Shown piece by piece: positions 8,369 to 64,000 of a stretch of DNA of 64,000 nt. The stretch comes from Neoconidiobolus thromboides FSU 785 (taxonomy: Eukaryota; Fungi; Entomophthoromycota), in the NCBI GenBank assembly GCA_025603075.1, contig MU626341.1:25153-89152 (forward strand), read 5' to 3'. Both the position numbers and the translations under genes were made by a program. The stretch's first letter is position 1. Every line of letters starts with the position of its first letter. The notes under the pieces were generated by a model. It did not search any database, was not told the origin of the DNA, and saw only the letters and a program-made list of their open reading frames with translations.

Positions 8369-9337
8369 ATGACTGGAGAACAATATATGGCAGGGGTAAA
8401 ACCCTTATCTCCTAATGAGATACCTGGATGGACTGCTCCAGTTTTATTTACTTTACTCATAATTGAATTGTTTGCTATAGCACTAAACGTTATTACTTTT
8501 TTCTTGATAAGAAAGCAAGGCTTTAAAACGGTAGACATGTGGATAGCGGCTATTCTTACAGTTGGAGATACTATTTATTTGATATATAAAATTGTACAAT
8601 CTGCTTTAGTTACAACTTACGACATTCAAACGATATTAATGGGAAGTGACGCTTATATGCAATTTGATGGGGCATTTGAGACTTTTATATTGTTGACTTC
8701 AATTAACTGTATGGGGGTTTTAGCTGCAATAAGGTTCTGGGGACTATACTTGAAAAAGCCTATTGTATCAAAATATTGGATACTGGCTTTTACTGTCGAA
8801 GAGATACTTATTTTGGTTGGTCTGATAGTTGCAGCCATATATAAAGAATTTGTTTTAGCTCCTGGGCAGCTTTATAATTGTATATATACTATCTCTACAT
8901 CTGGAATCACGAAATTTGTTATAACTTTACAAATTTTATATTTTCTATTAAACTGGGCTATTATAAATATTAGCTACCCACTTTTATGTAAAGGGTATTT
9001 AGAGCAACTTAGATATTATGATGTAGAGCAGGCTGCCAATCTTTATTCAATGAAACGATTCAGTAATGGGAAAAAAACGAGATTAATCGCAAAGACTGTG
9101 ATTCTTCTACTTTTATATAATTTTTGCATGGTGCCTAGTATAGTTGTTTTTTTCAAAGAGCAAATAACTGGGAATTTCAGAAGTTATAGTGAAGATTTTG
9201 TCTTCTCTTGTCCCTTATTTTTAGTGGCTCTTGTAAACCCATTAACTCTTTTGGTTCTTCACGACAATACTACCAAAATTTTCAAAGCTTCATTTGCTTC
9301 ATTCATTAACTCAATTAAATCTTACATATCAAAATAA
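8369..9337 (+). CDS. Class A (rhodopsin-like) 7TM receptor paralog 1
   Basis: 322 aa, seven hydrophobic segments; N1.50 (ALNVIT), D2.50 (LTVGD), R3.50 (AAIRFW), W4.50 (KYWIL), CMVP in TM6, NP in TM7. Confidence 0.85.
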   Translation: MTGEQYMAGVKPLSPNEIPGWTAPVLFTLLIIELFAIALNVITFFLIRKQGFKTVDMWIAAILTVGDTIYLIYKIVQSALVTTYDIQTILMGSDAYMQFDGAFETFILLTSINCMGVLAAIRFWGLYLKKPIVSKYWILAFTVEEILILVGLIVAAIYKEFVLAPGQLYNCIYTISTSGITKFVITLQILYFLLNWAIINISYPLLCKGYLEQLRYYDVEQAANLYSMKRFSNGKKTRLIAKTVILLLLYNFCMVPSIVVFFKEQITGNFRSYSEDFVFSCPLFLVALVNPLTLLVLHDNTTKIFKASFASFINSIKSYISK

Positions 9338-13049: not shown

Positions 13050-14039
13050 TTAAGATGAAGACTTGTAACTAAATCCACGATCTTTCTTTTTAAATTTTTC
13101 CACAATAGAATCAAACATTAATTTTAAATCCATATAAATACCATCATGTAAAACCATTAACATCATTGGGTTGACCACAGTAAAAAGCATTACAGTAACT
13201 GCTACTATGGAATCTTCAAGGCTACTTCTTAAGTGTGTCAATACTTGCTCCCTAACACTAATCACTAAATAAGGTACCATACACAAGTTATAAAGTAACA
13301 ACATGATACCTGTTTTGATATACGTACTACGCTTCTGCTTTCTTACACTTGCATTTAATGTATAAAATGAGCCGTTTATTTCACTATCCCCATTATCTTC
13401 AAGCAAATGGATAAATCGTTTAGCTAATAAAGGATAGCAAAAATTTACCAAAAATAAGCAAACAAAACTAAACAGTATGATATAGCATGCAGTAAATCTT
13501 GTTAAAACAACAACAGAAATGGTGTTAGGAAAATAGTACCTTTGGAACGGCATAAGTATAAAGTCCGTATTAACGAAGACGCCTATCAATAATAATATAT
13601 GAACAAATTGAAGAAATATAAATACAGCAACCCATATCCTTATCTTTAGGTCCTTTTTTAGATATAGAGCCCAATACCTTAGCAAAGCCAAATATCCGAC
13701 ACAACTTATTGAAAATAGTACAAAGAACACTTCAATGAGGCCATCATATTGGCCATAATATACATTTAAAAATATTTTTTCAATCCCTAACATATTAAAC
13801 GCTATCAATTGACAAAGTTTATAGCTGACAAATATAGCATCTCCAATCGATAAAAAACTGGCTATCCACATATCAAACGTTATGAATCCTTGTCTTTTCA
13901 CTAGATAGAAAGTGAATAAGTTAAAAAGGATAGATAAAGCTTCAAGTGCAATAGTCAAGTTGCCGCTAAATGCACGTTCGGAAGTAAAACTAGCGACTGG
14001 CTGCAAGGACAACTTGTCCATATATAATGTTGAATTCAT
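13050..14039 (-). CDS. Class A-like 7TM receptor paralog 2
   Basis: 329 aa; same motifs as paralog 1 (LFNLFT, LSIGD, ALLRYW, RIWVA, YNLCMVP, VVNPM). Confidence 0.85.
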   Translation of the reverse strand: MNSTLYMDKLSLQPVASFTSERAFSGNLTIALEALSILFNLFTFYLVKRQGFITFDMWIASFLSIGDAIFVSYKLCQLIAFNMLGIEKIFLNVYYGQYDGLIEVFFVLFSISCVGYLALLRYWALYLKKDLKIRIWVAVFIFLQFVHILLLIGVFVNTDFILMPFQRYYFPNTISVVVLTRFTACYIILFSFVCLFLVNFCYPLLAKRFIHLLEDNGDSEINGSFYTLNASVRKQKRSTYIKTGIMLLLYNLCMVPYLVISVREQVLTHLRSSLEDSIVAVTVMLFTVVNPMMLMVLHDGIYMDLKLMFDSIVEKFKKKDRGFSYKSSS

Positions 14040-16319: not shown

Positions 16320-17318
16320 ATGGTATACAAATTCTTTTTTTTCGTCATGGACTCGAGTGAATACATGAAACATTTAGTCATCCAACCTGTGGATAAGGAG
16401 GATTTGAACCGGATCATAAGCGGCTATATAATAATAAGTATTGAAATTTTAGCCTTTTTATTCAATGCTTTGACCTTTTATCTGATCAAAAAACAGGGGT
16501 TTAAAACTTTAGATATGTGGATAGCAAGTTGTTTAGCATTTGGTGATATCTTATTTGTAGCTTATAAACTGGCCCAATTAGTGGTATTTAGAGTTTTAGG
16601 TGTTGATAGTGTTTATTTAAACATTGAGTATGGCCAAGTGGATGGTTGCTTTGAAGTTTTTATGATGCTGTTTTCAGCCAATTGTGTTGGTGCGTTGGCT
16701 CTATTAAGATTTTGGGCACTGTATCTTAAAAGGCCAATCGTCAATGGTTATTGGATAACTATCTTTGTTCTTCAAAACATGATTTGTTTAACATTGCTTC
16801 TAATAGCTGCAGTAAAAAAAGAGTTTATCTTAATGCCATTACAACGATACTATTTTCTTAATACAGTATCCAACGTACTCTCAACAAGAATAGGAGCTTG
16901 GTTTATTATTATAACTAATATCTTTAATTTCATTATTGTAAACGTGTGTTATCCACTACTATATTATAATTTTAGTAATCGAATGGAAACCATAGATCAG
17001 GAGCGGGAGATTATTTTTGATAGCATTAAAACACGCTACAATAAGAAAAAACGGAGTATTTTAATCAAAACCTCAATCACGTTGTTACTATATAATACTT
17101 GCTTATTACCTATTTTAATTATCAGTATACGAGAACAGTTAAATGGATTCATAAAGTCATATAACCAAGATGTTATAGTTTCTTCCACTGTTATGCTTTT
17201 ATGCTTTGTAAATCCATTAATTTTATTAATCCTTCATGATGATATCAATAGGTCTTTAAAAGATATTTTGAAAGCAGTAGTAAGATTTATTAAGGGAGCA
17301 TTCAAGAGATGTCGGTAA
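16320..17318 (+). CDS. Class A-like 7TM receptor paralog 3 (true start may be ATG at 16347)
   Basis: 332 aa; LFNALT, LAFGD, ALLRFW, GYWIT, YNTCLLP, FVNPL; closest to paralog 2. Confidence 0.85.
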   Translation: MVYKFFFFVMDSSEYMKHLVIQPVDKEDLNRIISGYIIISIEILAFLFNALTFYLIKKQGFKTLDMWIASCLAFGDILFVAYKLAQLVVFRVLGVDSVYLNIEYGQVDGCFEVFMMLFSANCVGALALLRFWALYLKRPIVNGYWITIFVLQNMICLTLLLIAAVKKEFILMPLQRYYFLNTVSNVLSTRIGAWFIIITNIFNFIIVNVCYPLLYYNFSNRMETIDQEREIIFDSIKTRYNKKKRSILIKTSITLLLYNTCLLPILIISIREQLNGFIKSYNQDVIVSSTVMLLCFVNPLILLILHDDINRSLKDILKAVVRFIKGAFKRCR

Positions 17319-47130: not shown

Positions 47131-47197
47131 AGCTTGTAAAGTTGACTTACAAGCAAATGGTGCTTTGAAATATAAATGCAAGTAGACTTCACAATAT

Positions 47198-47294
47198 GGG
47201 GGTGTTTTTTAGCTTCATTACTTTTTCTACCTTTTAAGCACTATTTGAGTGGAAAAATTGTTAGTAAAATTCTTAAACGCAAAAATACATCCCC
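47198..47294 (-). mobile_element. MITE copy, plus partial copy at ~47362-47430
   Basis: Full-length; ATAT/ATTT flanks; 300 bp upstream of HTH gene copy 1. Confidence 0.88.
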
Positions 47295-47593
47295 ATTTAG
47301 TGTTTTCTAACTCAGTTCTTATTAGTATTTAGGCTTATATTTTCTTAATAACAAGGGATGCTTAAATGTTTTAGTTTCACCACTTTTCTATTCTTTTAAG
47401 CATTATTTGGGTAGAAAAGTACTAAAATTGTCAAAATACTTGTTCACATATATTCTTTGCTAAAAAAGTAATAGTATTTGACCAAAGTTGAATTTCTTTT
47501 CAGCTGATTTATGAGCCACATAAAGAACAATACGACAAAAGTGCAGAATATAAAAGAGAGATTGGGTTGCTTGAACTCAAAAAAAATCAAGAA

Positions 47594-48700
47594 ATGGAAA
47601 AGCCACACTCATCTAAAAGAACTGTTTTAACAATGAAAATAAAGCTTGATATAATTCATTTAGCTCAAAATAAAATATCCCATCAAAGTATAGCAAAAAA
47701 ATATGGGGTTGGAAGAAGTACCGTAACCAAGATTCTATCTCATAAGGACAAGATTGTTCAATTAAGTAATGGTATATTGGAGGATGAAAGAAAAAGGATT
47801 AGATTAAATGAGTTTGAAGATATTGAGCGTAAAGTTCTTGGATGGTTTGGTGCCAATCATAAAAGGAACAAAAGCAGAATTCTAATGCTTCCATTACAAT
47901 ATAACAGACAAATTATAATTGATAAGGCCAATAAAATCGCTGTTGAGTTAGGCAAAGGTGATATTGTAGCTGATGAGAAGTGGTTAAAGAAATTTTGTAG
48001 AAGGCATAAAGTCAAGTTTATAAATGACATCAAGAATAATTCTACTTGTTTAAATGATACTTCAAACCATACCACTACTGACGCTAATTCATTAGATAAT
48101 GACACTGTATATATATCCTCTGATTCTAATAATGGTTTTGATTCTTCAATAAATAATAGTTATAATAAAACTAAAGACCAAATCGTTCAACATATCAATT
48201 ATCAAATACAAAATGAAAATGAAAGTGTGATTATTGAACCAAATAATCTAAATCTAACTGATTGTGAATATAATATTATTAATGATTTAAATCAAACAAT
48301 TAATAATTTAAGGAGAACGATTGACGATCTAAAACAAAATGTTGGTAATCGAGATTTGATGGTTGATTTTCTATCTGATCACGTTTATAGTTTGTCTGAA
48401 TATGTACTTTCAATAGGTCAATGTGTTACACAGGATAATCTACAATTCAGTAACTTAATTAACCACATGAATACATCAAATCAATTTTCAAATCCTTGTC
48501 TTTTGACTAATCTACACTTTCGTCAAATTGGTAATCAACTGAACATGGCTAATTTAAATAATACAATATCGTCAATTAATGCGTCTAACTCAATGTCAAA
48601 CTTTCAGGGCCTTCCAGGATTTGGCACTAACAATAATACCTCAAGCAACTTAGATAATCAATATTTACATTTCCCAAATTATTTTTTTGAGAATATTTAG
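47594..48700 (+). CDS. CENP-B/pogo-derived DNA-binding protein copy 1 (HTH_psq + Tc5-type HTH, coiled coil, N-rich tail; no DDE)
   Basis: KRTVLTMKIKLDII...SHQSIAKKYGVGRSTVTKIL (psq HTH); EDIERKVLGWF...IIIDKANKIAVELG...ADEKWLKKFCRRHKV (Tc5 HTH); first ATG at 47594. Confidence 0.88.
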   Translation: MEKPHSSKRTVLTMKIKLDIIHLAQNKISHQSIAKKYGVGRSTVTKILSHKDKIVQLSNGILEDERKRIRLNEFEDIERKVLGWFGANHKRNKSRILMLPLQYNRQIIIDKANKIAVELGKGDIVADEKWLKKFCRRHKVKFINDIKNNSTCLNDTSNHTTTDANSLDNDTVYISSDSNNGFDSSINNSYNKTKDQIVQHINYQIQNENESVIIEPNNLNLTDCEYNIINDLNQTINNLRRTIDDLKQNVGNRDLMVDFLSDHVYSLSEYVLSIGQCVTQDNLQFSNLINHMNTSNQFSNPCLLTNLHFRQIGNQLNMANLNNTISSINASNSMSNFQGLPGFGTNNNTSSNLDNQYLHFPNYFFENI

Positions 48701-49266
48701 GCTCGCTAAACGTGCTTTATCCTCTTCTTTAAATTCTGTACTTCTAAACTCTATACTTAATATTAAGCATTTCCAATATTTTCTAATTATAGTATATGTA
48801 TAATAAAAACAATATCCTTATATTATTGTTACTATTATCATAGTGCTATGTTGCTATAATTAATATACTCTACATCATAATAGCCATTTATTACTAGTCT
48901 ATTTTATTAATCATCAATCATAGTAAGCTAATCATGATCTTTAAATTTTAAATAACAATAATAATTTATGTTTAATTTTTGACCAAGCTTTTAACGATCA
49001 TTATAGTTAACATACATATGTATAGTGTGACAATAACTTTGTTTAAATTTATGTATATTTGTTAAAACATTTTACAACAATAATAAAATTGAGTTAATTT
49101 GAATACATGAAAGTATTTTATTCTTATCAATAATTACATAGACTAGATAGTAAAATGCTATTACCTTTAAAAGAAATATCAAAAAATAATACAGGAAACC
49201 TGTATCCAAATGCAAAACTATAAAAGCATAAAGATTGAACTCTATTTCTATAATTTCTTATTTGAA

Positions 49267-50546
49267 ATGAATTCAACCTTTGATTTAAACAACCCAGACT
49301 CTTACCACCATAAAACCATTCAACTAAAAGATAAAATTTATCGTAAGTAATTAAATCACTCATATAAAGTCAAACCAACAATTTTTCAGATTATGTTGAA
49401 GAAGGTTTAGAAAATGCACCATATGTTTTATTACTACATGGGTTCCCAGAAGTAAATCAAAAGATCAACAAACTATAAACCTCTAATCAGTTTTTAGTCC
49501 TGGTACATGTGGAAGTACCAGATTTCATACTTAGTTGAAAAAGGGTATCACGTGGTAGCCTTTGATATGCCAGGTTATGGAGAAACAAAAGTAGAAAACA
49601 AACTTGAAAATTATACCTTAAAAGTGATAGCTGAGGATATTCATACTATTTTCACAGAGAATTTTCAACAGAATAAAGTATATATCATTGCTCATGATTG
49701 GGGTAGTTTTGTTGGTTGGGAATTAGCTTATAGATATCCAGAAAATATTCAAGGCTATATTAGTTTAAGTATACCATATTTTCCAACACTTGGAGAGCCA
49801 AAGAGTGAAAGACAAAAAGCTGAAGCATTTCCAGTTCTTGGTTATCAGGTAATTTGAAATACACAGCCAAGTTAGTGAATCAAGGTAATTAGCTATTTTA
49901 TTATTATATAGGTGGCTTTGAATGAAGGAAACATTGGAGAGTTTGATCAAAATGTAGAAAAATTTGTCAAAGCTTTTTATATCACGGTACCAAACTTTGA
50001 CAAAACTAATTATCTTAAAGTACCCTTGGATAAGTCATTGTTTGATCACTTTGATACTTTTGATAACTCAAAATCGGAATATATTGATGAAAATGTAACA
50101 GTTGTTATTTTTATTAAATATAATTAATGTTTATTAATATTCCTATATAGTACTTGAATTATTTAATCAAACAATTTAAAATTCAAGGTACCCAGGGCCC
50201 AACTAATTGGTATCGTACAAGCTTATTGAATGGTAAAAACGATCAAGAGAAGCCCAATTTAAATATTAGTGTTAAATGTTTACAGGTAAGGATATGCTTA
50301 ATGCTTTCATTATATTGGTTTTTAACGAAGAAATAGATATTAGGTGATAGAGATTTCTGTACAGGATTTAAAGATTTTGCTCAACATTACTTAAAAGAGG
50401 CTTCAACGGAGGCAAGTGGCTTATACTTTTTAATTATTAGTCTTTAATAACTGTTTTTACAGATTATCAATGGTGGTCATTGGATTCAATATCTTAACTA
50501 TGAGAAAGTGAATTCACTGATTGGAGATTTTTTAAAGCAGGTTTAG
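49267..50546 (+). CDS. Alpha/beta-hydrolase epoxide hydrolase, multi-exon
   Basis: Spliced HYVEEG...LLLHGFPESWYMWKYQ...FDMPGYG...AHDWGS (nucleophile Asp)...GPTNWYR...GGHWIQ. Confidence 0.9.
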
Positions 50547-50596
50547 AATTCAAATCGACAACTGTTATTCAAAATAAAATTAAGCTATCATTATGT

Positions 50597-50672
50597 GAAG
50601 TGTTTTTTTGGTTTCATTATTTTTTCCATCTTTTAAGCATTATTTGAGCGAAAATCATTAGCAAAATCCTTT
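50597..50672 (-). mobile_element. MITE copy, truncated
   Basis: GAAGTGTTTTTTTGGTTTCATTATT...AAGCATTATTTGAGCGAAAAT. Confidence 0.75.
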
Positions 50673-50753
50673 AATATATGTGAATGTATTTTTTTAATAT
50701 ATGTCTCACTTTCAAGAATTTAAAAAACAGCTGTGATAAACCTCAACATTGTA

Positions 50754-50824
50754 TGCGTACACTGGGAATCGAACCCAGGCCACTTCTTTGGAAGAGAAGT
50801 ATTCTACCTCTATACTATGTACGC
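50754..50824 (-). tRNA. tRNA-Gly(TCC), intronless
   Basis: GCGTACA acceptor stem pairs with TGTACGC; D arm GTATAGAGGTAGAAT; anticodon arm CTTCT-CT-TCC-AA-AGAAG; T arm CTGGG-TTCGATT-CCCAG. Confidence 0.95.
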
Positions 50825-50897
50825 TAAACTTATTTTTATAGAAAGATTTAAAAATATATATTAAAAAAAGTTAGTCATTATAATAGTTCACCCATAT

Positions 50898-50993
50898 GGG
50901 TGTATTTTTTTTGACTTCATTATTTTTCCACTTTTTAAGTGTTATTTGTGGAAAATTTGTTAGTGAAATTCTTAAGCACAAAAATACATCACC
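50898..50993 (-). mobile_element. MITE copy
   Basis: Full-length; ATAT/ATAT flanks. Confidence 0.88.
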
Positions 50994-51098
50994 ATATAAT
51001 TTAATTACACTTTTAGTAAAAGTATGGATATTTTCAGTAAAAAAACAGCAGAAATAAAAATTTTAACTTTATCACTTCCAGAAATGATCTTAATATGA

Positions 51099-51568
51099 GG
51101 TGTGAAATCTGGTACTCAGTGATTGGAGTCAAAAAACAGCTATTGCTCAGTTGACTACACTATAAGTCGAAAGGTCTTAGTTTATGTGACTAAGATAAGC
51201 TTGGATTATGAAGGATAGCACGTAATAGGCTACAAACTATGTAAAACAAATAGAATAGATAATACTAATGTAAAATCTACGTAAAATACTATTAAGAAAA
51301 CTCAGTGGCTTTATTAGGTGTTCGAGATATCAGTGAGTAATTCAGTTAAAAAGCCTCGAACTACTATACTGAAAACTCTTTTATACTCTGAAAAGTATAA
51401 ATATCAAAATGAGAGGATAATATTCTTTGGGATGGAGCTAGAAATTCTCATAGCAAATCAAACTAAGAACGTAGGATTGATTTTCTCTGAACTCGAGAAC
51501 ACAATAGCTTAGGCAATTATTATGCTATAATTAACCATGGGACTCACAAAGCGATATTTCACAGAGGG
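51099..51568 (+). repeat. Second copy of the LTR-like repeat at 6742-7215 (inverted)
   Basis: Shared blocks GGTGTGAAATCTGGTACTCAG, GTTGACTACACTATAAGTCGAAAGGTCTTAGTTTATGTGACTAAGATA and CTCTGAACTCGAGAACA. Confidence 0.85.
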
Positions 51569-51973
51569 ACTTTGACATCATTAACGATTATGCTATCCTG
51601 ATAAGCATTGGCAACATAAACGGTATTGATAAAGCAGATTAATACTGGAGTGTTTTTAATAAATGGAATGGGGTATAGGATTTTGCTTTTATAGTAATTA
51701 TTAGGTAAATCAGAATTTTTTTGTTTTTAATTGATACATTGTTAAAATAAAAAAAATTAAATGAGAATGATTTGATATAAAGGGTCTTTTTCTGTTTCAC
51801 GAAATCTAGTTGATGACCTGAGTAAAAAACTCTTTTTAAGCACTTCTGAATAAAGGTATTTAGTGATATCTGGGTATGAAGTTAGGATTAGGGGATGTAT
51901 GCGTTTCTTTAATTTCTCAAATTTTTAACTGCAGGATAAATAAAATTATCTACATGAGAGAAAAAATGCATAT

Positions 51974-52071
51974 GGGGATGTATTTGTTTTTAAGAATTTC
52001 ACTAACAAATTTTCCGCTCAAATATTGCTTAAAAAATGGAAAAATAATGAAGTCAAAAAAAAAACACTCCT
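51974..52071 (+). mobile_element. MITE copy
   Basis: Full-length; ATAT/ATAT flanks. Confidence 0.9.
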
Positions 52072-52454
52072 ATATAGACAAATGGCCCAATTTACACCAT
52101 TTTAACCAACAGTTTATATACTCACCTTTTCCATATAAAGGAACTAGATTCTATTTTAAAACGTAACTTTTTATTGCTTCAAATCCTTACAGTAGAACAA
52201 AAATACACTTATTTGGGAAAATGACTTAATGTTTGTAAATTTTTATGAATTCTATTTAATCCAAAAATAATATAAAAATAATTTAAAAACTATTTTAGAG
52301 ACAAGAAATGTAAGTTGTTTTAAAATAAAAACATATGATTCACTTTGTTGTATTTTATTTCACTCGTATTGTTTATTTCCAAGCTATAATAAAGTCCAAA
52401 AAATTTAGTATTAGAATCATTTTACTAGCTACTGTATTAAGTGAGGATATATAT

Positions 52455-52752
52455 GGGGATGTATTTTTGTGTTTAAGAATCCTACTAACAATTTTTCTGC
52501 TTAAATAGCGCTTAAAAATGGAAAAAATAATGAAGTCAAAAAAAACACTCCCATATGGTGATTTTTTTTTTGATTTCATTACTTTTTCTATTTTTTAAAC
52601 TCTATTTGACCAAAGGTTGTTAGTGAAATTCTTAAACAAAAAAACATATCCCCATATGATGATGTTTTTTTTGATTTCACCTTTTCCATTTTTAAGTGCC
52701 ATTTGAGCGGAAAGATTTCTAATAAAGTTCTTAAATGAAAAAATACATCCTC
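52455..52752. mobile_element. Triple MITE array: 52455-52552 (+), 52557-52653 (-), 52658-52752 (-)
   Basis: Three copies each separated by a single shared ATAT. Confidence 0.92.
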
Positions 52753-53274
52753 ATATGTTGCTAAGTATTGTAAAAAATAGATAATAAAAATACAACTTAA
52801 ACAACAAATAGTTTTTATGTCTAAAAAAAGCCTATTTTAAATAATTTTTTCAATTGTTGCAGTTATATGTTTACTGTTTATTTTTTTGTATAACTCTTAA
52901 CATTAGGTAATCCCCTATATGATTATAGAAAACTAAATTTTACAGCGGTATTTAACAGCTTAAAGTTAGCAGTTTATTGCCATCTAAAACTAATGAAATA
53001 ATCACATTAGTCACTATTTGTTATTTAATGTGACTTATAATTAGTATATTATAATATTTGTACAATGTATATGTGGTATAGGAGTAAAAAATACCGATAT
53101 TTAATATAATAGCTATAAACAGAATTCAGGAGAAACGCAGGTTTCGAAGAAGATAAAGTATATTTTAAAGGCCAAAGATTTATGAATGAGTTAGGGAATT
53201 GAAAAACCGATCATCAAAGCAGTCTAAAATACTACCTTTGATAATGTGCTTTGAAAAACCCAGGTTAATCGACA

Positions 53275-54372
53275 TTACATCAAATCATTAATCAGCTCAC
53301 TTTCCCAAGTTGTGTTGAATTGGATATTGTTTTGACCAAAAAAGGAATTGATTAGTTGTGTTGTACTATATGGGTTACTTTGATGAGCCGTATGGAATTG
53401 GGTATTATTTTGATTAAAGGATTGGTTAATTGAGGAAATATAAGAATTTACAAATTGATTTGGTGTATTTATGTGAATATCCAAATTACTAAATAATACA
53501 TTGTTATTTACAACATTTTGTGTTATTGAAGCTACGCGTTGACTTAACTTATTTAACTGTTCAGACAAAACTTTGGTATTTGAATTTATATTATTAATAA
53601 TTTCTTTTAAATCATTAATAGCACTAGCTTTACTTTTACTTGAGTTTGCTTTTCTCAAATCAATAATGTCGTTTGGATCTCGAAACTGTGTCTCAGAATC
53701 AATATGAGCTGATTGGTCTTGGTTTTTACTATATTGGATTTGAATATTATCAGGATTTACAGATGAGCCCACCTGATCACACTCATTGGCTTTTGTTAGA
53801 TCAATAATATTACCAAAAACTGAGCACACATTATCAATGTCCTTGATCAAGTAATTACTATGAGTGGTAGAGCCATGGAGCGACGATATTGTATTACTAC
53901 TGCTTAGAGAATCGCTTGAACGAATGGGGCTGTCATTGGTGTTGCTTTCAAATTTGAGTTTAAATCTTCTACAAAATCTCTTCAACCATTTCTTATCAGC
54001 TATAAAGTCGGCTTTGCTTAATTCAACAGCGATTTCATTGGCTTTATTAATTATAGCTTGCTTGTTGTATTGTAAAGGAAGTAGTAGATTCCCATCGTTA
54101 TTTCTTTTGAGACTAGTACCAAACCACTCAAAGACTTTACGCTCAATATCGACAGAATGATTCACTCTAATACGTTTTCTTTCATCTTCAGTTACACCTT
54201 TACTTTCTTTGATAATATCATCTTTTCTTAACAAAATCTTAGTGACTGTGCTTCTTCCAATTCCATATATTTTTGCTATACTTTGGTGAGACATTTTATT
54301 TTCAGCTAAATTGATTATATCGAGCTTTATTTTCATCATTAAAACAACTCTTTTGGACGAATTTTCTTTCAT
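53275..54372 (-). CDS. CENP-B/pogo-derived DNA-binding protein copy 2 (no DDE)
   Basis: 365 aa; KRVVLMMKIKLDII...SHQSIAKIYGIGRSTVTKIL, DIERKVFEWF...ADKKWLKRFCRRFKL, heptad SAINDLKEIINN...LSEQLNKLSQ, N/Q-rich tail. Confidence 0.88.
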   Translation of the reverse strand: MKENSSKRVVLMMKIKLDIINLAENKMSHQSIAKIYGIGRSTVTKILLRKDDIIKESKGVTEDERKRIRVNHSVDIERKVFEWFGTSLKRNNDGNLLLPLQYNKQAIINKANEIAVELSKADFIADKKWLKRFCRRFKLKFESNTNDSPIRSSDSLSSSNTISSLHGSTTHSNYLIKDIDNVCSVFGNIIDLTKANECDQVGSSVNPDNIQIQYSKNQDQSAHIDSETQFRDPNDIIDLRKANSSKSKASAINDLKEIINNINSNTKVLSEQLNKLSQRVASITQNVVNNNVLFSNLDIHINTPNQFVNSYISSINQSFNQNNTQFHTAHQSNPYSTTQLINSFFGQNNIQFNTTWESELINDLM

Positions 54373-54529
54373 AATTTAAAGTTGATTTGATTATTATTTT
54401 TAAAATAAGTTTTTCAGAAAACGTTGCATTTATTGAATTTATACTATTTAGCTAAGTTCTTATAACGCTAACTATGAAATTATGTTAATTCTTTAGATGC
54501 TAAATAACTCAAACAGGTCTGATTGGATA

Positions 54530-54570
54530 TTGATTTTTTGATTGATTTTTTGATTGATTTTTTGATTATT
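54530..54570. repeat. 12-bp tandem repeat (TGATTTTTTGAT)x3 upstream of HTH copy 2
   Basis: Read directly from the sequence. Confidence 0.8.
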
Positions 54571-56073
54571 GAAAAATGCTTATTTCTTAATCAGGGTTAT
54601 TGGTGAGCAGTGTTCATTCACTGTAATTTATTTTGAGTTATATAAAAATTTGATGAGCATATATTATTCATGGTACTCAAATGATTGAAATAGGTATAAA
54701 CTATTTGGGTTTATATCATCCCTGTATCGACAAGTTTTTTAAAGGCTAATAATGTTAAAACAAAAACTATATTAAAGCTTAATATATAAAAAACATTGCT
54801 ACATTATTCATTAAATGAATATTTCCAATTCAACTTAAGTGTTATATTATCGGTTTATCCCCTACATCGTCTTAACTAAATGCTTTAAATAGCGCTTTTA
54901 TTCGTTTCTGTTTGACTTTAGTTAATACAAAAGTATTCAAAGTTATATAAAAATAGACTATACACCCTTGCCACTTTATATTAAAATTTTATTGTATGAT
55001 TTTACTTAGATCTTTCTTATTTATATTAATAGTATTTACCATAACATTAAAACGCTTAGGATTCAATATTTTCCTAAACAAAAATTACTAGAATAAAACA
55101 AAAAATCCTAAAAATTACCAGAATTCATCTGAATTGAAAGCTGTTTATGTTAAATATAGGTATGTTATGAGTTATCTTTTGACTTTGTATCGCCTATCTT
55201 TTTTATATCTATTTTTGATAGTGCTAAGTTATACAATGCCATATTTGAACATTTCCCCTTCTAGACTATTCAAGTTTCTTAATAACTTGTTCTACATAAT
55301 CAATATTTCTATTTATAAAAAATATTAATATCCGAAAGTTGAAAATTAAATTTAATATTTTACTCCTTTTAAATGCGATTTTGGGCACTTTTGATTTTTA
55401 TTTAATCATTTTAAAGATTGGCATTTTATGTTTTATATTGACCAAAGACGAAGTAAAAGTGCCCAATTCACATTTAAAACGAATTGATAATAGCAGTCAA
55501 CCTATATGATTTTTAAGATCAATATTATTCTTAAATAATCAATGTAGTTAAAAATAAACCTTAATAGGCTTGCTTAACTTTATTTTTTAATTAAGATTTC
55601 ACTTATTAGTAATTCTACCTTCTTCAAATTTTAATAAAAAGTATATTTCCATATTAAAACAATTTAAATTAAATATGACTAAAGCGTACTTAATCTTCCA
55701 AAAGATTACATTAATGTTCAATTATTTGATTAAACTTTAAATAATTCATGTCAAGTATTTTATATCTTAACTCTCCTTTTATAAAAGTTATTGAGCATTA
55801 TTAAGTCAAACTAACGAGATCATTTTAATAACTTAAAGTTGCCATAATCAAGATTTAATGTACAAATAGATTATTTGTATTTATAGGTTATTTTTGGATT
55901 ATGATATCTTCAAGTTATAAAGAGAACCACATTTAGCTTAAATTGGTAACAGTTCGTTCATCACTTCATCAAAGGAATAGTCAACTTATTTGAAGCATAA
56001 TCAAATCATTGATTAATGTGATACTGTGAATTTCAATATATGAGACTTTATGATGTTATAGATATTATTATAT

Positions 56074-56356
56074 GGGGATGTATTTTTGTGTTTAAGAATT
56101 TTACCAACAAAATTTCCGCTTAAATGGCGCTTAGAAAATGGAAAAAATAATGAAGTCAAAAAAAACACTCTCATATGATGTTGGCTTTTTTTATTTAATT
56201 TTACATTTTTCAAGCGCTATTAAGTGAGAAATTATCGGTAGGAACCAAACAAAAAAGACATGGGGATATATTTTTTGTTTAAGAACTTTACTAATAATCT
56301 TTCCGCTCAAATAGCGCTTAAAAATGTGAAAGTAATGAAACCAAAAAAATATCCCC
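56074..56356. mobile_element. Triple MITE array: 56074-56172 (+), 56177-56257 (-, degenerate), 56262-56356 (+)
   Basis: First junction is a shared ATAT; third copy flanked by ACAT/ACAT. Confidence 0.9.
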
Positions 56357-57750
56357 ACATGTTCTAATGACATCTTATATTTGGTTAAGTCGATATACTC
56401 TAACAACCCAATAACCAAATGAATAATGGAATCCTTTTTTAGGATAAAAAGCAGTAATATAAAAAGACTTCCCATCTAAAAAGTGTTTCGTCTTTGAAAT
56501 AAAAAACGAACATGGACAGTCTGCTTAAAAATAAAGCATCAAGACAATATAACAAGCAAATCTGGTATAAGAAGAAATAAAGTGACTATGATGTCTTTGA
56601 AAAAAGACGTAACTATTCAAGAAGGTAACAATATGTCTGAAGATGAAAGTAAAATAATCAGGATAAACGAAGTTCATAATAGAGGAAATTTACCATTCCC
56701 ATTGCAATCTAATGAGGAAAATTTAATTTAAAGCCCAAAAGAAAGTTTATTAAGTTATTCATAACACCTTTTATAGCTAGCGGAAAATTTATAAAGAACA
56801 TATGTAGAAATTATAAGTTTAAACTGGTCAACAGCATCAAATGTACCCCCATTTATGTAAAGAACAATTCAAACGGCCATAATGCAATGTAATTATGCTA
56901 TGGTTATTCTATTGGTCCCAATCCTTTGGATGACTCCACTGTGAATGTCTTTGATTTTGATGATCCTGTCGATTCGCCAAATGATACTAATTCAGAGGCT
57001 TCATTGATAAGCTCTATAGTTGATACTGATACTTTTGATAGAGACATTTCAGATATACATTCTAATTCCGATAACGTCTTTTCCTCGCTAATAGGCAATT
57101 CCTTTTATGAAACGCCCTTAAACGGCTTTCCTTATGATATTATGGCCCTTTTCAACAAATATATTGGGGATATACTCTTATTCTGTTAATGATATAAATT
57201 CTTTAATAGGTAATGGTTTTGGTGAAATAACCGCTTCCTATGGTTTTGATATAGATACTGACTCTTTAAATAGTAATGTTATAGATATACTCTATGGTTC
57301 TGGAAACATTATCAATTATTCAATGACTGAGAAATTTGAAACGAAGCCTTTCAGCAGTATTGTTGACCATCATTTCACTCTTATTATAGCCATAGTATCC
57401 CTTTGGATAATACTTATAGTGAATTGGATCAATCCGTAGATATTATCAGCATTTTCAACCAATCTAATGAAGTTAGAGATCAAATTATGAGGGAGAATAT
57501 TAATTCAAACAATTCAGACTTAAATGAGGATGACAATCTCTCGGATAACCTTCTTTGTTATAAATTTTATAAGAGTTCCAGGAGAATGAAAAGGTCTGGT
57601 TGTATATTTTTTAATCATAAATATTCTGACATCTTAACTAGTTATAAATATAAACGCAATGCTAACGATGACTTAAAGGAAACAGAAAATGGTTTAATAA
57701 AGTAGATTCATCCACAAATCCCATTTACAAGGAAATCAAGAATAATGAAT

Positions 57751-57849
57751 GGGGATGTATTTTTGTGTTTAAGAATTTTACTAATAAATTTTCCGCTCAA
57801 ATAGCGCTTAAAAGGTGGAAAAAGTAATGAAATCAAAAAAATCATCCCC
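57751..57849 (+). mobile_element. MITE copy inside the HTH pseudogene
   Basis: Full-length; GAAT/GAAT flanks. Confidence 0.92.
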
Positions 57850-58335
57850 GAATATTTACATAAATATTATAATAGTATTGATATGAACACTCTAAATTTG
57901 CAAAGTAATATATCTAATATTGTTAAAAGTTTGGGATAAACAAGTACTAATCATGAAGATATATATAAAAACATGGCTGAATTTTACGATGAGCTTAAAT
58001 ATGATAATCCTATTAGGCTTTTTTACAGTGGTATTGATGAAGACAATCTATACTTGAATAATTATGAGTCTAATATTATCAATACTGTTAATTTACCAAC
58101 GAATAATAATTGTAATAAAACAGATCCATCCATAAATCCTGTTTGTGATGAAAGTAAAAATAATGAAAATAAAAACATATTTAATAATGCTATCGATTTA
58201 AACACCTTATCCTCGTATAGCAATGAAACAAACATCACTAATATTTCAATGAATAATAATTTTGATGAGATAAATATATCCATAAATCATGCCTATACCG
58301 AAATTAAAAATAATGAAAATAAAGGTTCAATATAT

Positions 58336-58434
58336 GTGGGTGTTTTTTTTGGCTTCATCATTTTTTCTATCTTTTAAGCGCCATTTGAGCGGAAGAATTA
58401 TTAGCAAAATTCTTAAACACAGAAATACATCCCC
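58336..58434 (-). mobile_element. MITE copy inside the HTH pseudogene
   Basis: Full-length; ATAT/ATAT flanks; removal of the element plus one TSD restores the reading frame. Confidence 0.92.
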
Positions 58435-59323
58435 ATATAATAACATCAATTCCGACATGTTAAATTCAAATGGTAGTGAAGCCGGTATAATAAATAACTT
58501 AATGCAGTTAATAATTGAATTTAAACTCAATTATCAAAAACATATCTAATCAAGTATTTCTGTTAAATAAAATTTAATTTGATAAATGAAAGTATTGAAC
58601 AGTATAATAAACTACCCGGTAAATCACATAGCCTAATAAATATGGCAAATCAATTCTAAGTCCCCATATTTGACCAACCAACCAATATTTTGATCCAAAT
58701 AATACTCATTTTGTTATATCAAATCAGCTTGCGTGCCCTCATATTTTTCCAATTAATTCATATCTTGGTATAAATAATAATGAATTTAGTAGCAATTCAT
58801 ACTTTGATTCATATAATAATCAGTTTATTAACAACTCATCTTTTAACCTAAATATTAATCCATATTCTAATTTAAACTATAAACATAAACAGATTAATAC
58901 GAGGGATCAAAATGATTTATTCAATAAATTCGATGTAATGTTAACTAACTCAAGTTTTTCAGGGCTCAAATTCGATAATAACATTCCGGATAATAGTAAC
59001 ACAAATCAATTATAACGATAAACAGCTTTTATCAACGTATTTTATCCTTTTCTTTTTATGCCATTGATTTTTATGAACTCTCTGTAATGCTTATAACTTC
59101 AAATTTCAATAATTTTTATATCCGTAACACCTGTGCAACATAAACATTAGCCTTATTATGTTTGCTAACTGTATACTGCGTTATAATAATGCAAAGCAGT
59201 TTAGTATTGATGCTTTATTTATTATAAGTAATAATCAATAAATAAGTATCCTATTTAAATTTTTAAGTAACATTAATTATTATTTTTTAATTAGATACCA
59301 AAAAAACTATGCCTTTATTATAT

Positions 59324-59420
59324 GGGAGTGTTTTTTTTGACTTCATTGTTTTTTCCACTTTTCAAGCGCCATTTGAGTGGAAAATGTTGGTAAAATTCTT
59401 AAGCACAAAGATGCATCCCC
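59324..59420 (-). mobile_element. MITE copy
   Basis: Full-length; ATAT/ATAT flanks. Confidence 0.9.
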
Positions 59421-59837
59421 ATATAATGGAAACTAGAAGAGTTAGTTTAGAGAAAAGTCACATATAGAAAGAACCTTTGAGCCTTAAGACTAAGAGCCAT
59501 TGCAGAATAACAATTTTATTTTGTTTGATTTTTATATTAAGTTTCTTATCATTATATTAAATTTAGAGCAGTTTTTATATTTGTATATTATTAAATAGCT
59601 TTTATTTATTCATACATATTTCTTTGGATTGTCTGATACTATTAATATAGATTGTATGTATTATTTGTAAAGTATGATTTTATCATTTCAATTTTATAAA
59701 AAAAATTAAAGATGCTAAAACTTTATTACCCCTTTAATTTCGATAAGCTCGATTACTGGGTTCATCTTAAATTTCACTATTACAAATAAAACATTCAATA
59801 GTTCCTGACTCTTTTGGGACTTCAAAGAATCACTTAA

Positions 59838-59944
59838 ATATATATATATATATATATATATGTATTTAAGAACTCCACTAACAAATTTCCCACTCAAGTA
59901 GCGTTTAAAAGATAAAAAAAGTAATGAAACCAAAAACATCCCTC
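59838..59944 (+). mobile_element. MITE copy whose left end is replaced by a (TA)n microsatellite (59838-59861)
   Basis: (TA)~12 then TGTATTTAAGAACTCCACTAAC...TAGCGTTT...CATCCCTC followed by ATAT. Confidence 0.82.
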
Positions 59945-60190
59945 ATATACTGCAACTATTTGATAATAATACTATTTATTAATTTTTATTTTTGTTTATA
60001 TAAAGCATTAGTTTTATATACTATTTAATCAAATTTATTTTTATTAGTAGTAAATCCTAATAATTTTTCTTTCCTTTTTTGTTTTATAAAATTTTATAAA
60101 CTCTGAGTTATTATATATCTATTAGCATTTGAAAAAAATATAAGTCTTCCAAAATAATTTTTTTATTTAAGCTTTTTAAATTTAATTAAT

Positions 60191-60285
60191 GGAAGTGTTT
60201 TTTTCAGCTTTATTATTTTTTCTCTTTTAAGCGCTATTTGAGTGGAAAATTTGTTAGTAAAATTTTTAAACAAAAAAATATCCCT
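60191..60285 (-). mobile_element. MITE copy
   Basis: Full-length; TAAT/TAAT flanks. Confidence 0.87.
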
Positions 60286-61080
60286 TAATCATATATTAAG
60301 AACTTACAAATTTAGAAACTTAATTTAAATTGGCTTTTAACTAAATTCTAAAATTGATTTGGGCATCCTATGCAATAAAATAAAGCTTGAATTGTAAATA
60401 TTAGCATACATAATAGATTCTCATAAGCAAAGAACTATTCCAGGTTTTTTGATCTACATAGGTTGCTATTTAATTTAAGTGTTTTGCGATTTTTGTAAAT
60501 TTGGATTAACAATAACTTCAGCAATCTTCTTTTTAATCATTTAACTCTTTAAATAATAAAAAACTTAATGATTGTATACAAGTATAAAAAATTATGAAAA
60601 GTGATATAAAATATTTGAAAAACTATTGGACAGAATTTCTTTAATACAAAAAAGCCATTAGCTATCAACATCAATTAAATAAAAACTAGTATTAGTAAAA
60701 TTTAGTTTAATTTAATTTAGTTTAATTTTATAAAGGGAATTATTTTAAATTCTAGGCAAAATAAACTTCACAATTTAAAAAAATTAAATGTATATAAAAC
60801 TCAAAAATACATTGTTTCTTTAAATCATACCAAAAACTATAAATGTTAACAGGTGACCTCATTTTTTGTTTTTATAGGTTAATCTTTATAGCAAAAAAAT
60901 CAACCCAATCACAATCGCTTTTATGTAAATATGACGATTGACGATTTACAATGACTTAAATTGGTGCACGCTTTAAGAACCAAGTAACAATATTTAAATG
61001 GTGGAGTCTTTTTTTGAGTATTAGTAAATAGTAATAAAAATTCTTTATCTAAGAAAAGCGTGTTGTCCTTAAAATAACCA

Positions 61081-62229
61081 ATGTACATTATGAACATTAT
61101 GGATTCACTTGGAAACAAAGTATTACAACAAAGTGCAACAGATGAATCTGATATTGGAGGAATTAAAGTCACCGAGGTAAATGAATTCAATGACGGTGGC
61201 AACTTGGAATTCCCATTGCAATATAAAGGGGAAGATCTACTTGATAAAACCAGAAAAAAGTTTGTTAAGTTAGTCAAAACGCATTTTATAACTAATAAGA
61301 AATGGGTAAAAAAATTGTGTAAAATATTCAAGTTTGAACCAACAAATAATGTCAAAAGTGGTTCCACCCACTCAAATGATATGTCAAACAATAATTTTGG
61401 GTTGGCTTTATTCTTGATGTCTACTGGCGAATACGGTACTTTAGATACTGATGATGCGGATCTATCACATGGAGATGATAACGGTTTTAATTATCAATTG
61501 TGTAATAGTTTTAAAGGAGTATGTATATGTACAAATTCTATTTGTGGTAAAAGTATAAACAATGAAGATCTAGACCAATTCATCATTGATATTAATTCAA
61601 ATACTATTTACTCAAGTGCCAGTGAGACCAGCATTATTAATAATTTAAGACAGATAATTAATAGTCAGGATTTATTGATCAAGACCTTATCCGAACAAGT
61701 TTCTAAATTAAGTCAAGACATAACTTTGGTAAATCAAAATGTTGAATATCAAAGCCGATTGCTGTGTAACTTTCAAAGTCAAACAAATATGGTAGATTGC
61801 ACTGGATATCATCAGATTTCGCCAATTAATCCGTTTTTTGATATAAGTAACAACCAATTCGATCAGATTTGGCAAAACAATCCATATAATACATTCAATA
61901 CAACCTTAAATAATCCATCTTCTGGTCTGAGCAATACTCAGGTTGATACGCTTTGCCAAAATACCTTACCTAATACATTGGATTCGATGGCAACTAACTT
62001 ATCTTCTCATATAAATAATAATCAGTTTGGGATGTACCATCAAAATAATTCCTATAGCACTATTTTTCCAACTAATCCATTTTTTGGCCCAAATAGCACA
62101 CAACTTAATGTAACTTACCAAAAAAATTCATTTGATGCATTCGATACAATGCCACTTAAACCAACTTCCCCAGGGCTCTATCTCGATAATAGCGCCCTGA
62201 GAAACATTGATAAAGGTTTCATACAATAG
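61081..62229 (+). CDS. CENP-B/pogo-derived paralog copy 3 with eroded DNA-binding domain, intact coiled coil and N/Q-rich tail
   Basis: 382-aa ORF; colinear with copy 1 but AKKYGVGRST is replaced by TDESDIGGIK and DIERKVxxWF is deleted; keeps FPLQY, NKKWVKKLCKIFKF and SIINNLRQIIN...LSEQVSKLSQ. Confidence 0.75.
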   Translation: MYIMNIMDSLGNKVLQQSATDESDIGGIKVTEVNEFNDGGNLEFPLQYKGEDLLDKTRKKFVKLVKTHFITNKKWVKKLCKIFKFEPTNNVKSGSTHSNDMSNNNFGLALFLMSTGEYGTLDTDDADLSHGDDNGFNYQLCNSFKGVCICTNSICGKSINNEDLDQFIIDINSNTIYSSASETSIINNLRQIINSQDLLIKTLSEQVSKLSQDITLVNQNVEYQSRLLCNFQSQTNMVDCTGYHQISPINPFFDISNNQFDQIWQNNPYNTFNTTLNNPSSGLSNTQVDTLCQNTLPNTLDSMATNLSSHINNNQFGMYHQNNSYSTIFPTNPFFGPNSTQLNVTYQKNSFDAFDTMPLKPTSPGLYLDNSALRNIDKGFIQ

Positions 62230-63606: not shown

Positions 63607-64000
63607 CTAATGGTTATTCCAAAGCTTATAGTACTCCCCTTTAAGCTTTAAAAGATCGTCATGTGTGCCTCGTTCATGGATTTTACCATCCTTCAAACTA
63701 GATCCTATTTTAGTCATGCTTATCAAATTAAAGTAATTTAGTTACCATATAATACAATCAGCATGTTTTATGGTTGTCAGTCTATGTGCAATAATGACCA
63801 TAGTTTTCTTTTCTCTTGAGAGATTCTTTAAAGCTTTTTGCAAAAGGTTCTCTGTGATACTAAAATAATAAGGTTAACTAAGAAATTAAAGATCTTATGT
63901 TAGTTACTTATCCAATGATGAAGTAGCTTCATCAAGTATAATAACTGGTGAATCTTTTAAAAATACTCGGGCTAATAAAAGTCAATTACTATAATTTAAG
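63607..64000 (-). CDS. 3' end of an ABCB-type ABC transporter (NBD); gene extends beyond the window
   Basis: Spliced LARVFLKDSPVIILDEATSSLDNITE...MVIIAHRLTTIKHADCIICLKDGKIHERGTHDDLLKLKGEYYKLWNNH* (Walker B, D-loop, H-loop). Confidence 0.92.

Follow-up and report, generated by a model that had tools for sequence, protein, structure and literature searches.

A four-copy cluster of pogo-type DNA-binding genes in Neoconidiobolus thromboides is one branch of a larger, DDE-less family

Human CENP-B has a bipartite N-terminal DNA-binding domain (DBD) composed of two helix-turn-helix (HTH) units (PDB 1HLV). It has kept a DDE_1-like domain in its centre as well as an acidic region, and it pairs through a C-terminal helical domain. 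Abp1, Cbh1 and Cbh2 of fission yeast and Pdc2 of budding yeast are domesticated full-length pogo transposases, immobile and serving the host as DNA-binding proteins (PMC5391189, PMC7386202). Co-option of the DBD alone is one of two domestication pathways (PMC13548663). In Drosophila, cag, CG4570 and the pipsqueak/BrkDBD group (Tc1/mariner-pogo) followed this route, with the DNA-binding module kept and the catalytic domain lost. The kind of event, transposase domestication, is already known; the family described here is itself uncharacterised.

Four neighbouring pogo-transposase-derived copies are found in the insect-pathogenic fungus Neoconidiobolus thromboides, within a stretch of 64,000 nucleotides (the window). 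Each lies where an earlier note on this DNA had placed it, and open reading frames (ORFs) and tblastn confirmed the four paralogs, the copy at ~56470 being a pseudogene. The features of the cluster are:

47190-47303, + strand: example copy of a ~110-nt MITE family (nhmmer map, alignment, repeats)
47594-48700, + strand: copy 1, intact ORF, 368 aa
47615-48040, + strand: copy 1 DBD, aa 8-149 (Pfam, AF2 model)
aa 154-215 of copy 1, + strand: disordered linker (AF2 model)
48260-48475, + strand: copy 1 helices, aa 223-294 (AF2 model, heptad test)
aa 298-368 of copy 1, + strand: disordered N/Q/S tail
49507-49857, + strand: alpha/beta-hydrolase exon, unrelated gene between copies 1 and 2 (Pfam Abhydrolase_1)
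53275-54372, - strand: copy 2, intact ORF, 365 aa, N/Q-rich tail
53938-54354, - strand: copy 2 DBD, aa 7-145 (Pfam)
53524-53628, - strand: copy 2 unbroken five-heptad segment, aa 249-283 (heptad test)
~56460-59000, + strand: copy 3, pseudogene (tblastn, six-frame reading, nucleotide alignment, MITE map)
61030-62229, + strand: copy 4 including upstream relic; ORF 61081-62229, 382 codons
61228-61326, + strand: copy 4 HTH2 remnant, aa 50-82 (alignments)
61624-61785, + strand: copy 4 long helix, aa 182-235 (AF2 model)

The family shares with CENP-B the bipartite N-terminal DBD, but its proteins contain neither the DDE_1-like domain nor the acidic region. The cluster follows the same logic as CENP-B in joining a DBD to dimerising helices, although pairing is putative here, and its helix, in which Pfam does not recognise the CENP-B dimerisation domain, is of independent origin. 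Like Abp1/Cbh1/Cbh2 and Pdc2, the family is fungal, pogo-derived, immobile and apparently host-used; whereas those proteins retain a DDE_1-like region and are encoded by single genes or small sets, the family is DDE-less and occupies 27 places, mostly in tandem arrays. It resembles cag and CG4570 in the route taken. However, these are single conserved animal genes, whereas the family is a large, fast-diverging fungal set with disordered tails, in which one branch gained a coiled coil and includes a copy without a DBD.

The cluster is not a pure array, because the unrelated alpha/beta-hydrolase gene sits between copies 1 and 2; its exon matches Abhydrolase_1 with an E value of 4e-20, over profile positions 16-107 of 245 only. 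Genes neighbouring the cluster carry introns. In public annotation, copy 2 is a 339-aa model starting at Met27 and copy 4 a 382-aa protein (NCBI), and copy 1 is missing from the public protein set. Exact-product look-ups for expression of the four copies matched no record.

Copies 1 and 2, which are 45% identical overall and 67% in the DBD, contain a CENP-B-type double HTH domain formed by a CENP-B_N/psq HTH and a Tc5 HTH. The Pfam scores are 43.6 and 36.4 bits, respectively, for CENP-B_N (cut-off 21.2) and 31.7 and 32.3 bits for HTH_Tnp_Tc5 (cut-off 22.2). The two motifs, thought to be common to the four copies, are complete in this pair only: copy 4 keeps an HTH2 remnant and copy 3 partial remains. 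The family DBD spans ~145 residues, and the family profile matches residues 4-129 of CENP-B in 1HLV (E 9.6e-18). In the AF2 model of copy 1, block means in the DBD are mostly at pLDDT 81-98, with a loop at residues 61-65 below 50, and the sole significant PDB match found by Foldseek is 1HLV (E 1.2e-5, 135 columns, 29% identity). The structure prediction proposed in the earlier note thus suggests that this domain folds like CENP-B(1-129). Across paralogs, conservation is highest in the HTH1 recognition helix (GRSTVTKI), where the mean top-residue fraction is 0.87, compared with 0.43-0.59 in the other helices.

In copies 1 and 2 a disordered linker joins the DBD to a helix with a heptad pattern, beyond which lies a disordered tail rich in N/Q/S. 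The LPLQY-type linker described earlier is present in all four copies (LPLQY, LPLQY, FPLQS and FPLQY). The heptad segment also stands: over 35 residues in each of copies 1, 2 and 4, nine of the ten a/d positions are L/I/V/M, compared with 2-4 of the 25 others, a pattern matched by none of 300 shuffles of any copy. Copy 1 carries a 14-residue insertion, exactly two heptads, relative to copies 2 and 4. The AF2 models, which are of monomers, place two helices in copy 1, at 223-248 and 253-294 (pLDDT ~80), and a single 54-residue helix, 182-235, in copy 4 (up to 93), where residues 1-50 are below 50. An I/L/N/K-rich heptad helix is, however, a comparatively easy product of AT-rich codons. The low-complexity tail is borne out by the last 80 residues, in which the N+Q fraction is 0.31-0.33 (copies 1 and 2) or 0.21 (copy 4), compared with 0.06-0.10 in ordinary long ORFs of the window.

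The presumed four-member family proved to be one branch of a larger one, with 27 matching places in the 24.6-Mb genome, on at least five contigs, and ~25 frames of 164-382 codons still open at 26% GC and dS of at least 0.9. Among the paralogs, CENP-B_N is matched in 19 of 24 and HTH_Tnp_Tc5 in 15 of 24; their identity to copy 1 is 21-45%. The label “lineage-specific” was too narrow in the sense of species-private, as one member lies outside this genome, in a public read-set assembly. The tree groups paralogs by contig and places copies 1 and 2 within a clade that otherwise lacks the coil. Pfam DDE_1 has no match in any of the copies or paralogs, and coil and tail are confined to the contig of this cluster (C84). 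Replacement of a transposase core by the coiled coil, as formerly proposed, does not fit this distribution, which argues that the DDE domain was absent before the expansion and that the coil was a later local addition.

Genome-wide, DDE_1 matches two places only, both on other contigs, and neither gene is found by the family profile. The same genome holds a separate full-length-type candidate, a 693-aa ORF with HTH_Tnp_Tc5 and DDE_1 on contig C88. No DDE remnant was detected anywhere on this contig or in the vicinity of a paralog, and no TIR or TSD was found bracketing any copy. The reported lack of a DDE region and of element TIRs is upheld: the long inverted pairs in 45-63.9 kb join MITE with MITE or copy 1 with copy 2 only, none being pogo-element TIRs. 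The nearby inverted repeats are thus MITEs, not pogo-element ends. These are independent insertions, each with GGG...CCC at its ends and flanked by a 4-bp target duplication (12 copies aligned with their flanks). By nhmmer, 18 of the 28 copies in the window lie in 45.4-62.9 kb, the first 45 kb holding 10; at least 3490 candidate copies exist genome-wide (a rate of at least ~0.14 per kb), and other arrays of the family contain 41 matches in 90 kb.

Regarding selection, the dN/dS comparison suggested earlier gave, for the DBD of copies 1 and 2, dN 0.20 and dS 0.91-0.93, a ratio of ~0.22, with pN below pS in 1000 of 1000 bootstraps; the DBD ratio of the C14 pair is 0.24. Outside the DBD the ratio for copies 1 and 2 is ~0.67-0.77. 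All these ratios are rough because dS is near saturation, and alignment of the tails at the amino-acid level biases pN downward. The coil segment of copies 1 and 2 alone exceeds 1 (NG86, 41 codons), and coil plus tail has a pN/pS of 0.78, with 7% of bootstraps reaching 1. The DBD is under purifying selection, and the remainder is weakly constrained.

Copy 3 survives as tblastn pieces at 56528-56761, 56749-57087, 58024-58257 and 58743-58982, in three different frames, and is damaged by an in-frame TAA (56500-56502), frameshifts, an expanded internal repeat and MITEs inserted at two sites (57746-57855 and 58328-58444). In copy 4 the former N-terminus is the upstream relic, which ends at a TAA (61075-61077) ahead of the present ATG (61081). 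HTH1 is gone, HTH2 has lost helix 1 and is reduced to its last two helices, and Pfam finds no HTH match. Since copy 3 is dead, the cluster is subject to birth-and-death turnover, as the earlier note had proposed; copy 4, with its dead DBD, agrees with this.

We consider it likely that the four copies form a local branch within a family that is maintained by the host and stems from the N-terminal DBD of a pogo/Tc5-type transposase, and that they encode DNA-binding regulators pairing through the helix. That the copies are instead decaying, internally deleted pogo transposons, or relics devoid of host function, is nearly untenable. In its favour are the transposase-type DBD, the presence of one pseudogene and of one copy with an impaired DBD, and the abundance of mobile elements in the region, but this reading is contradicted by the missing DDE remnants and bracketing TIRs or TSDs, by tandem, divergent copies where dispersed and similar ones would be expected, by the DBD ratio, and by the ~25 open frames, which neutral decay would not permit. 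It is also very unlikely that copies 1 and 2 work while copy 4 is a young pseudogene open by chance, the helix being an AT-rich, low-complexity by-product without pairing function. The premature TAA directly upstream of the ATG, the in-frame DBD deletions and the relaxed ratios of the copy 1/copy 2 coil and tail would suit such a history. However, copy 3 has the same TAA and likewise lacks helix 1 of HTH2; now at 57-67% DNA identity to copy 4, it has since acquired many stops, frameshifts and MITEs, whereas copy 4 has none within its 382 codons. In a neutral, substitution-only simulation, <0.2% of copies keep an open frame at 0.1 substitutions per site, an argument that presupposes a fair share of the divergence on the branch of copy 4. 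The coil is the part of copy 4 best conserved with copy 2 (51% amino-acid identity, dN/dS 0.33; coil plus tail pN/pS 0.60, a value of 1 or more being reached in 4 of 1000 bootstraps), and three copies share the heptad register, even across the 14-residue indel.

A role as repeat- or transposon-directed chromatin proteins, in place of gene-specific transcription factors, appears rather unlikely; such proteins would bind a repeat such as the MITE and recruit silencing while the coil bridges bound sites. The arrays do sit in MITE-rich DNA, but this enrichment may merely reflect their long intergenic spacers. Conservation of the HTH1 recognition helix suits a shared target better than diversified ones; yet the motif S-T-x-x-x-I of helix 3 is kept throughout CENP-B_N domains, so that this conservation may be structural. 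There is precedent in the S. pombe CENP-B homologs (PMC5391189), the likeness being to Abp1/Cbh1/Cbh2 at retrotransposon LTRs and to CENP-B at satellite DNA. Nevertheless, the MITE ends and 4-bp duplication differ from the TA of pogo elements, and therefore recognition of the MITE by the DBD through descent cannot be assumed.

For the favoured reading, a host-maintained family of regulators, the sequences show that its members derive from a DBD of the pogo/CENP-B type, are immobile and devoid of a DDE domain, and are old duplicates with nearly all frames open. The module of CENP-B_N/psq HTH and Tc5 HTH would have been the source, the DDE domain having been lost, or never captured, prior to expansion. 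The proteins would be sequence-specific regulators, with a DBD that may dock on DNA like CENP-B(1-129) and an effector function probably carried by the variable disordered tail. In the C84 branch, the heptad helix would have arisen within the tail once this branch had separated from its closest coil-less paralog. Copy 4 probably lost its DBD before the copy 3/copy 4 duplication, with frame and helix kept; the best interpretation is that of a partner without a DBD, which could titrate copies 1 and 2. Id proteins are inhibitory partners of HLH factors that lack the DNA-binding region; by analogy only, without homology, copy 4 has such a titrating architecture, with a putative pairing helix and no working DBD. 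The most likely role of the proteins is therefore that of DNA-binding regulators pairing through the helix, with copy 4 as a possible partner. Through this helix, copies 1 and 2 most likely form homo- or heterodimers; if they do dimerise, the recognised site would be doubled or two sites would be bridged.

The cluster consists of four paralogs of a gene for a CENP-B/pogo-type DNA-binding domain (DBD), which is built of two helix-turn-helix motifs, CENP-B_N/psq (HTH1) and HTH_Tnp_Tc5 (HTH2). A repeat of ~110 nt, here called the MITE, is scattered through it.

47594-48700, + strand: copy 1, uninterrupted open reading frame (ORF) of 368 aa
53275-54372, - strand: copy 2, uninterrupted ORF of 365 aa
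56528-58982, + strand: copy 3, pseudogene with stops, homologous pieces in three frames and two internal MITEs
61081-62229, + strand: copy 4, 382-codon ORF with no HTH match

The earlier note had ascribed both HTHs to all four copies. This holds for copies 1 and 2, which score 43.6 and 36.4 bits with CENP-B_N (Pfam gathering cut-off 21.2 bits) and 31.7 and 32.3 bits with HTH_Tnp_Tc5 (cut-off 22.2 bits), but not for copies 3 and 4. No HTH domain of copy 4, CENP-B_N included, exceeds its Pfam cut-off, and only the last two helices of its HTH2 are present. Copies 3 and 4 share a TAA triplet (56500-56502 and 61075-61077, respectively) at the position of codon Ile16 of copies 1 and 2, and helix 1 of the second HTH is missing from both; the damage to the DBD therefore predates their duplication. 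The two are now 57-67% identical in DNA. After the duplication, copy 3 gained frameshifts, stops and MITEs, while copy 4, read from a new ATG at 61081, has remained an open frame of 382 codons. In the public annotation (NCBI), copy 4 is a 382-aa protein, copy 2 is given as 339 aa from an internal Met, a model that misses the first 26 residues of the DBD, and copy 1, the best preserved of the four, is absent from the protein set. A further family protein, P0021 (gene in locus L015), is annotated with an intron that interrupts its second recognition helix. Revision of the family's public gene models is needed. Exact look-ups of the products of copies 1, 2 and 4 for transcript evidence returned no record, in a collection from which records of this genome may be missing.

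Structure prediction, a check named in the earlier note, returned a CENP-B-like DBD followed by disorder and helices, and the LPLQY-type linker, heptad segment and N/Q/S-rich tail were all found as described there. The AF2 model of copy 1 draws on 24 paralogs. In it, the DBD spans residues 10-150 with block means mostly of 81-98 pLDDT (loop 61-65 below 50), residues 154-215 are disordered, two helices follow at pLDDT ~80 (223-248 and 253-294), and the tail is disordered. The sole significant PDB match of this DBD in Foldseek is 1HLV, CENP-B(1-129) on DNA (E 1.2e-5, probability 1.00, target TM-score 0.63), and the family profile aligns with residues 4-129 of 1hlv_A at E 9.6e-18. The model of copy 4 gives residues 1-50 a pLDDT under 50 and shows a weak HTH2 remnant; its single confident element is a helix of 54 residues (182-235), where pLDDT rises to 93.

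The helix behind the DBD carries a regular heptad pattern and is referred to here as the coil. In 35-residue windows of copies 1, 2 and 4, L/I/V/M occupy 9 of 10 a/d positions versus 2-4 of the 25 other positions, a pattern reached by none of 300 shuffles, and the predicted coil helices have pLDDT ~80-93 in the AF2 monomers of copies 1 and 4. Relative to copies 2 and 4, copy 1 contains an insertion of exactly 14 residues, that is, two heptads, so that the register is kept. The tails are disordered (pLDDT <50 in the models of copies 1 and 4) and rich in N and Q, with an N+Q fraction over the last 80 residues of 0.31 in copy 1, 0.33 in copy 2 and 0.21 in copy 4 (ordinary ORFs, 0.06-0.10); this enrichment is one of composition only, N-rich tails being common in this AT-rich genome.

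The catalytic part of the transposase has been lost. No match to DDE_1 was found with Pfam in copies 1, 2 and 4 or in any of the 24 paralogs, and what lies behind the DBD in the models of copies 1 and 4 is disorder and helices only, in a family of proteins of 164-382 aa. Nor do terminal inverted repeats with a TA target duplication bracket the genes between 45 and 63.9 kb, where all long inverted pairs are copy 1/copy 2 or MITE/MITE pairs. The HMM scans and the inverted-repeat map thus agree with what had been read from the sequence, that the cluster carries neither a DDE region nor element ends. The genes are immobile: in protein the paralogs share 21-45% identity with copy 1, and they lie in tandem and group by contig on the tree, so that a pogo transposon with dispersed, near-identical copies was rejected. 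A six-frame scan of the genome placed DDE_1 at two sites only, on contigs C88 and C51. Both are single-copy ORFs with an HTH and a DDE_1 domain (L026:826-2904, + strand, 693 aa, on C88, with a long poly-N-rich tail; L027:1156-2547, - strand, 464 aa, on C51), and both are candidates for a pogo transposase domesticated at full length, as in the CENP-B/Pdc2 type, with no close kinship to the DBD-only family. They were discarded as source elements, being unmatched by the family profile at E <=0.001.

Each MITE was inserted independently and belongs to a non-pogo element; the MITEs are not the ends of a gene-carrying pogo element. They end in GGG...CCC and have their own 4-bp target duplications (e.g. 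ATTC, ATTT, ATTT). The window holds 28 copies (47190-47303 and 27 more), 18 of them within 45.4-62.9 kb, and the 24.6-Mb genome at least 3490 candidate copies, the best of which are 88-96% identical to the copy at 47190-47303; further copies were recorded in loci L029-L037.

The family extends well beyond the cluster. A six-frame genome search with copy 1 gave 25 places, and a search with the family profile gave 27, with ~25 open frames of 164-382 codons. Most members stand in tandem arrays on contigs C147, C170, C207, C14 and C84, the last being that of the window, and the arrays that were fetched contain family genes, MITEs and almost nothing else. CENP-B_N exceeds its Pfam cut-off in 19 of 24 paralogs and HTH_Tnp_Tc5 in 15 of 24. 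The layout is the same throughout, with the DBD (~145 residues) in front and a variable tail of low complexity behind it. The coil and the C84-type tail were found on C84 only. A maximum-likelihood tree built on the DBD joins copies 1 and 2 as sisters, with support of 100/99, and nests them inside the C147 clade, adjoining a coil-less paralog at C147:32.4 kb that has a related linker, LLFPLNY. Since no paralog has a DDE domain and copies 1 and 2 are nested in this way, the DDE region was already missing when the family began to expand, and the coil was acquired later and locally. The description of these genes as having had their transposase core replaced by a coiled coil therefore gives the wrong history.

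Many paralogs on other contigs carry a conserved motif, (V/I)-(K/R)-S-N-V-P-(E/D/Q), directly behind the DBD. It was recorded at loci L004, L006, L010, L013, L014, L017, L018, L020, L021, L022 and L025 and in protein P0026, and the C84 copies have at most a degenerate trace of it. It has the look of a short linear motif for interaction.

Selection was estimated with NG86 and a p-distance bootstrap, YN00 being unstable on short segments. At dS ~0.9 and with an amino-acid-guided alignment of the tails, the following ratios are rough, and in most of the other pairs the synonymous sites are saturated.

Copy 1 versus copy 2, DBD: dN 0.20, dS 0.91-0.93, ratio 0.22; pN < pS in 1000 of 1000 bootstraps
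Copy 1 versus copy 2, non-DBD: ratio ~0.67-0.77; 2% of bootstraps reach 1
C14 pair, DBD: ratio 0.24

The DBD is under constraint. A dN/dS near 1, which the earlier note had set against its own proposal, is not what this domain gives between copies 1 and 2. The best-conserved part of copy 4 is the coil (51% identity and dN/dS 0.33 versus copy 2), and its coil and tail together have a pN/pS of 0.60, with 4 of 1000 bootstraps at 1 or above. In substitution-only simulations, fewer than 0.2% of 382-codon frames remained open at 0.1 substitutions per site; that ~25 frames are open at 26% GC despite a dS of ~0.9 is strong evidence of constraint.

Outside this genome, close relatives are few. Word-indexed searches with copy 1 and then with a 24-row profile returned this genome's own proteins only, and the ESM Atlas gave only weak leads (scores <=0.84). 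A full profile search gave 5882 proteins at E <=0.001, which represent the broad CENP-B/pogo DBD superfamily, and 36 at E <=1e-30, comprising the genome's own paralogs, animal multi-DBD proteins and one convincing outsider, P0026. The latter, 291 aa long and encoded on a contig of 1350 nt in read set ERR10900026, has both HTH domains and a KSNVP motif. The top-scoring long animal proteins were rejected as close kin because they hold 3-8 tandem CENP-B-type DBDs over which the scores sum. These chains (P0007, P0008, P0017, P0022 and P0023, 800-2300 aa, from scorpion, oyster and shrimp and two from ENA assemblies) may be genuine proteins with several DBDs or may stem from the fusion of gene models. 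On these searches the distribution of the family appears narrow, a status private to the species not being proven. No paper on this family or on the transposase-derived genes of this genome was found in the literature.

The genes adjoining the cluster are ordinary fungal genes, some of them intron-bearing, and the GC content is 26% throughout the window. An alpha/beta-hydrolase exon lies at 49507-49857, the Pfam profile being covered in part only. The cluster ends at most 1.8 kb from the end of contig C84 (window position 64000), in an assembly of 24.6 Mb in 799 contigs; no telomere repeats were found at this contig end and, given its proximity, further copies may exist past the assembly break. 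Elsewhere in the window, three paralogous ORFs of 322-332 aa lie within 9 kb (8369-9337, + strand; 13050-14039, - strand; 16320-17318, + strand). Pfam gave no match to them at E <=0.01; they have the appearance of multi-pass membrane proteins and may form a lineage-specific receptor-like cluster. Both a homeodomain and a TRF2/HOY1 PH-like domain are encoded by a 451-aa ORF at 2091-3446 (- strand), with Pfam E-values of 1.5e-19 and 3e-16.

With regard to function, we infer that the proteins would bind DNA in the manner of CENP-B(1-129) and use their tails for regulation. Dimers would form through the modelled helix in the C84 branch, where copy 4 is a possible titrator of copies 1 and 2. The fullest version of this scheme, in which a dimerising coil arose de novo from the low-complexity tail in one tandem cluster and a DBD-less, coil-only copy 4 then came to inhibit copies 1 and 2 through heterodimers that do not bind DNA, is in our judgement unlikely. 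If it were true, the cluster would constitute a complete regulator-plus-inhibitor module, recent, local and built from transposon parts.

The data leave room for another role, in chromatin, in which the DBDs of the family would have a common, possibly repeated, target. No element of the family is as conserved as the recognition helix of HTH1, GRSTVTKI. This speaks against targets that diversify as those of zinc fingers do, and it leaves an arms race of the KRAB-zinc-finger kind, with diversifying recognition helices, unsupported. The arrays are also rich in MITEs (41 matches in 90 kb of the other family arrays), at a density two- to several-fold above that of the first 45 kb of the window, which served as baseline together with the genome-wide candidate count. 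Against this, the MITE is not pogo-like, and long spacers alone may explain its enrichment. That the DBDs recognise it by common pogo descent is likewise unsupported, given its 4-bp target duplication and GGG...CCC ends.

Retention of the DBD alone from a Tc1/mariner-pogo transposase is a described route of domestication (PMC13548663), and full-length pogo domestications are well known, such as CENP-B, Abp1/Cbh and vertebrate genes (PMC7386202, PMC5391189). Purifying selection on the kept module, one of the criteria for a domesticated transposase-derived host gene that we adopted from PMC13548663, is seen in the DBD, the values being approximate at dS ~0.9. In contrast to the full-length group (CENP-B, Abp1/Cbh, Pdc2, TIGD/JRK), the family has no DDE_1-like central domain and, since this is the defining feature of that group, it is placed outside it as a DBD-only derivative. 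Most studied DBD-only co-options are single, old, conserved genes. What is unusual here is the size of the family and its tandem organisation in an early-diverging fungus, as well as the added coil of the cluster and the DBD-less copy that keeps it. The practical stakes are modest, the family being annotated as "hypothetical protein" in an aphid pathogen with no known tie to virulence. Intact DBD-plus-tail genes, a newly added putative pairing helix, a DBD-less copy that keeps this helix and a dead copy are found together within 15 kb, and the cluster thus offers a compact natural series for the question of how a DNA-binding protein of transposon origin gains partners and comes to be regulated.
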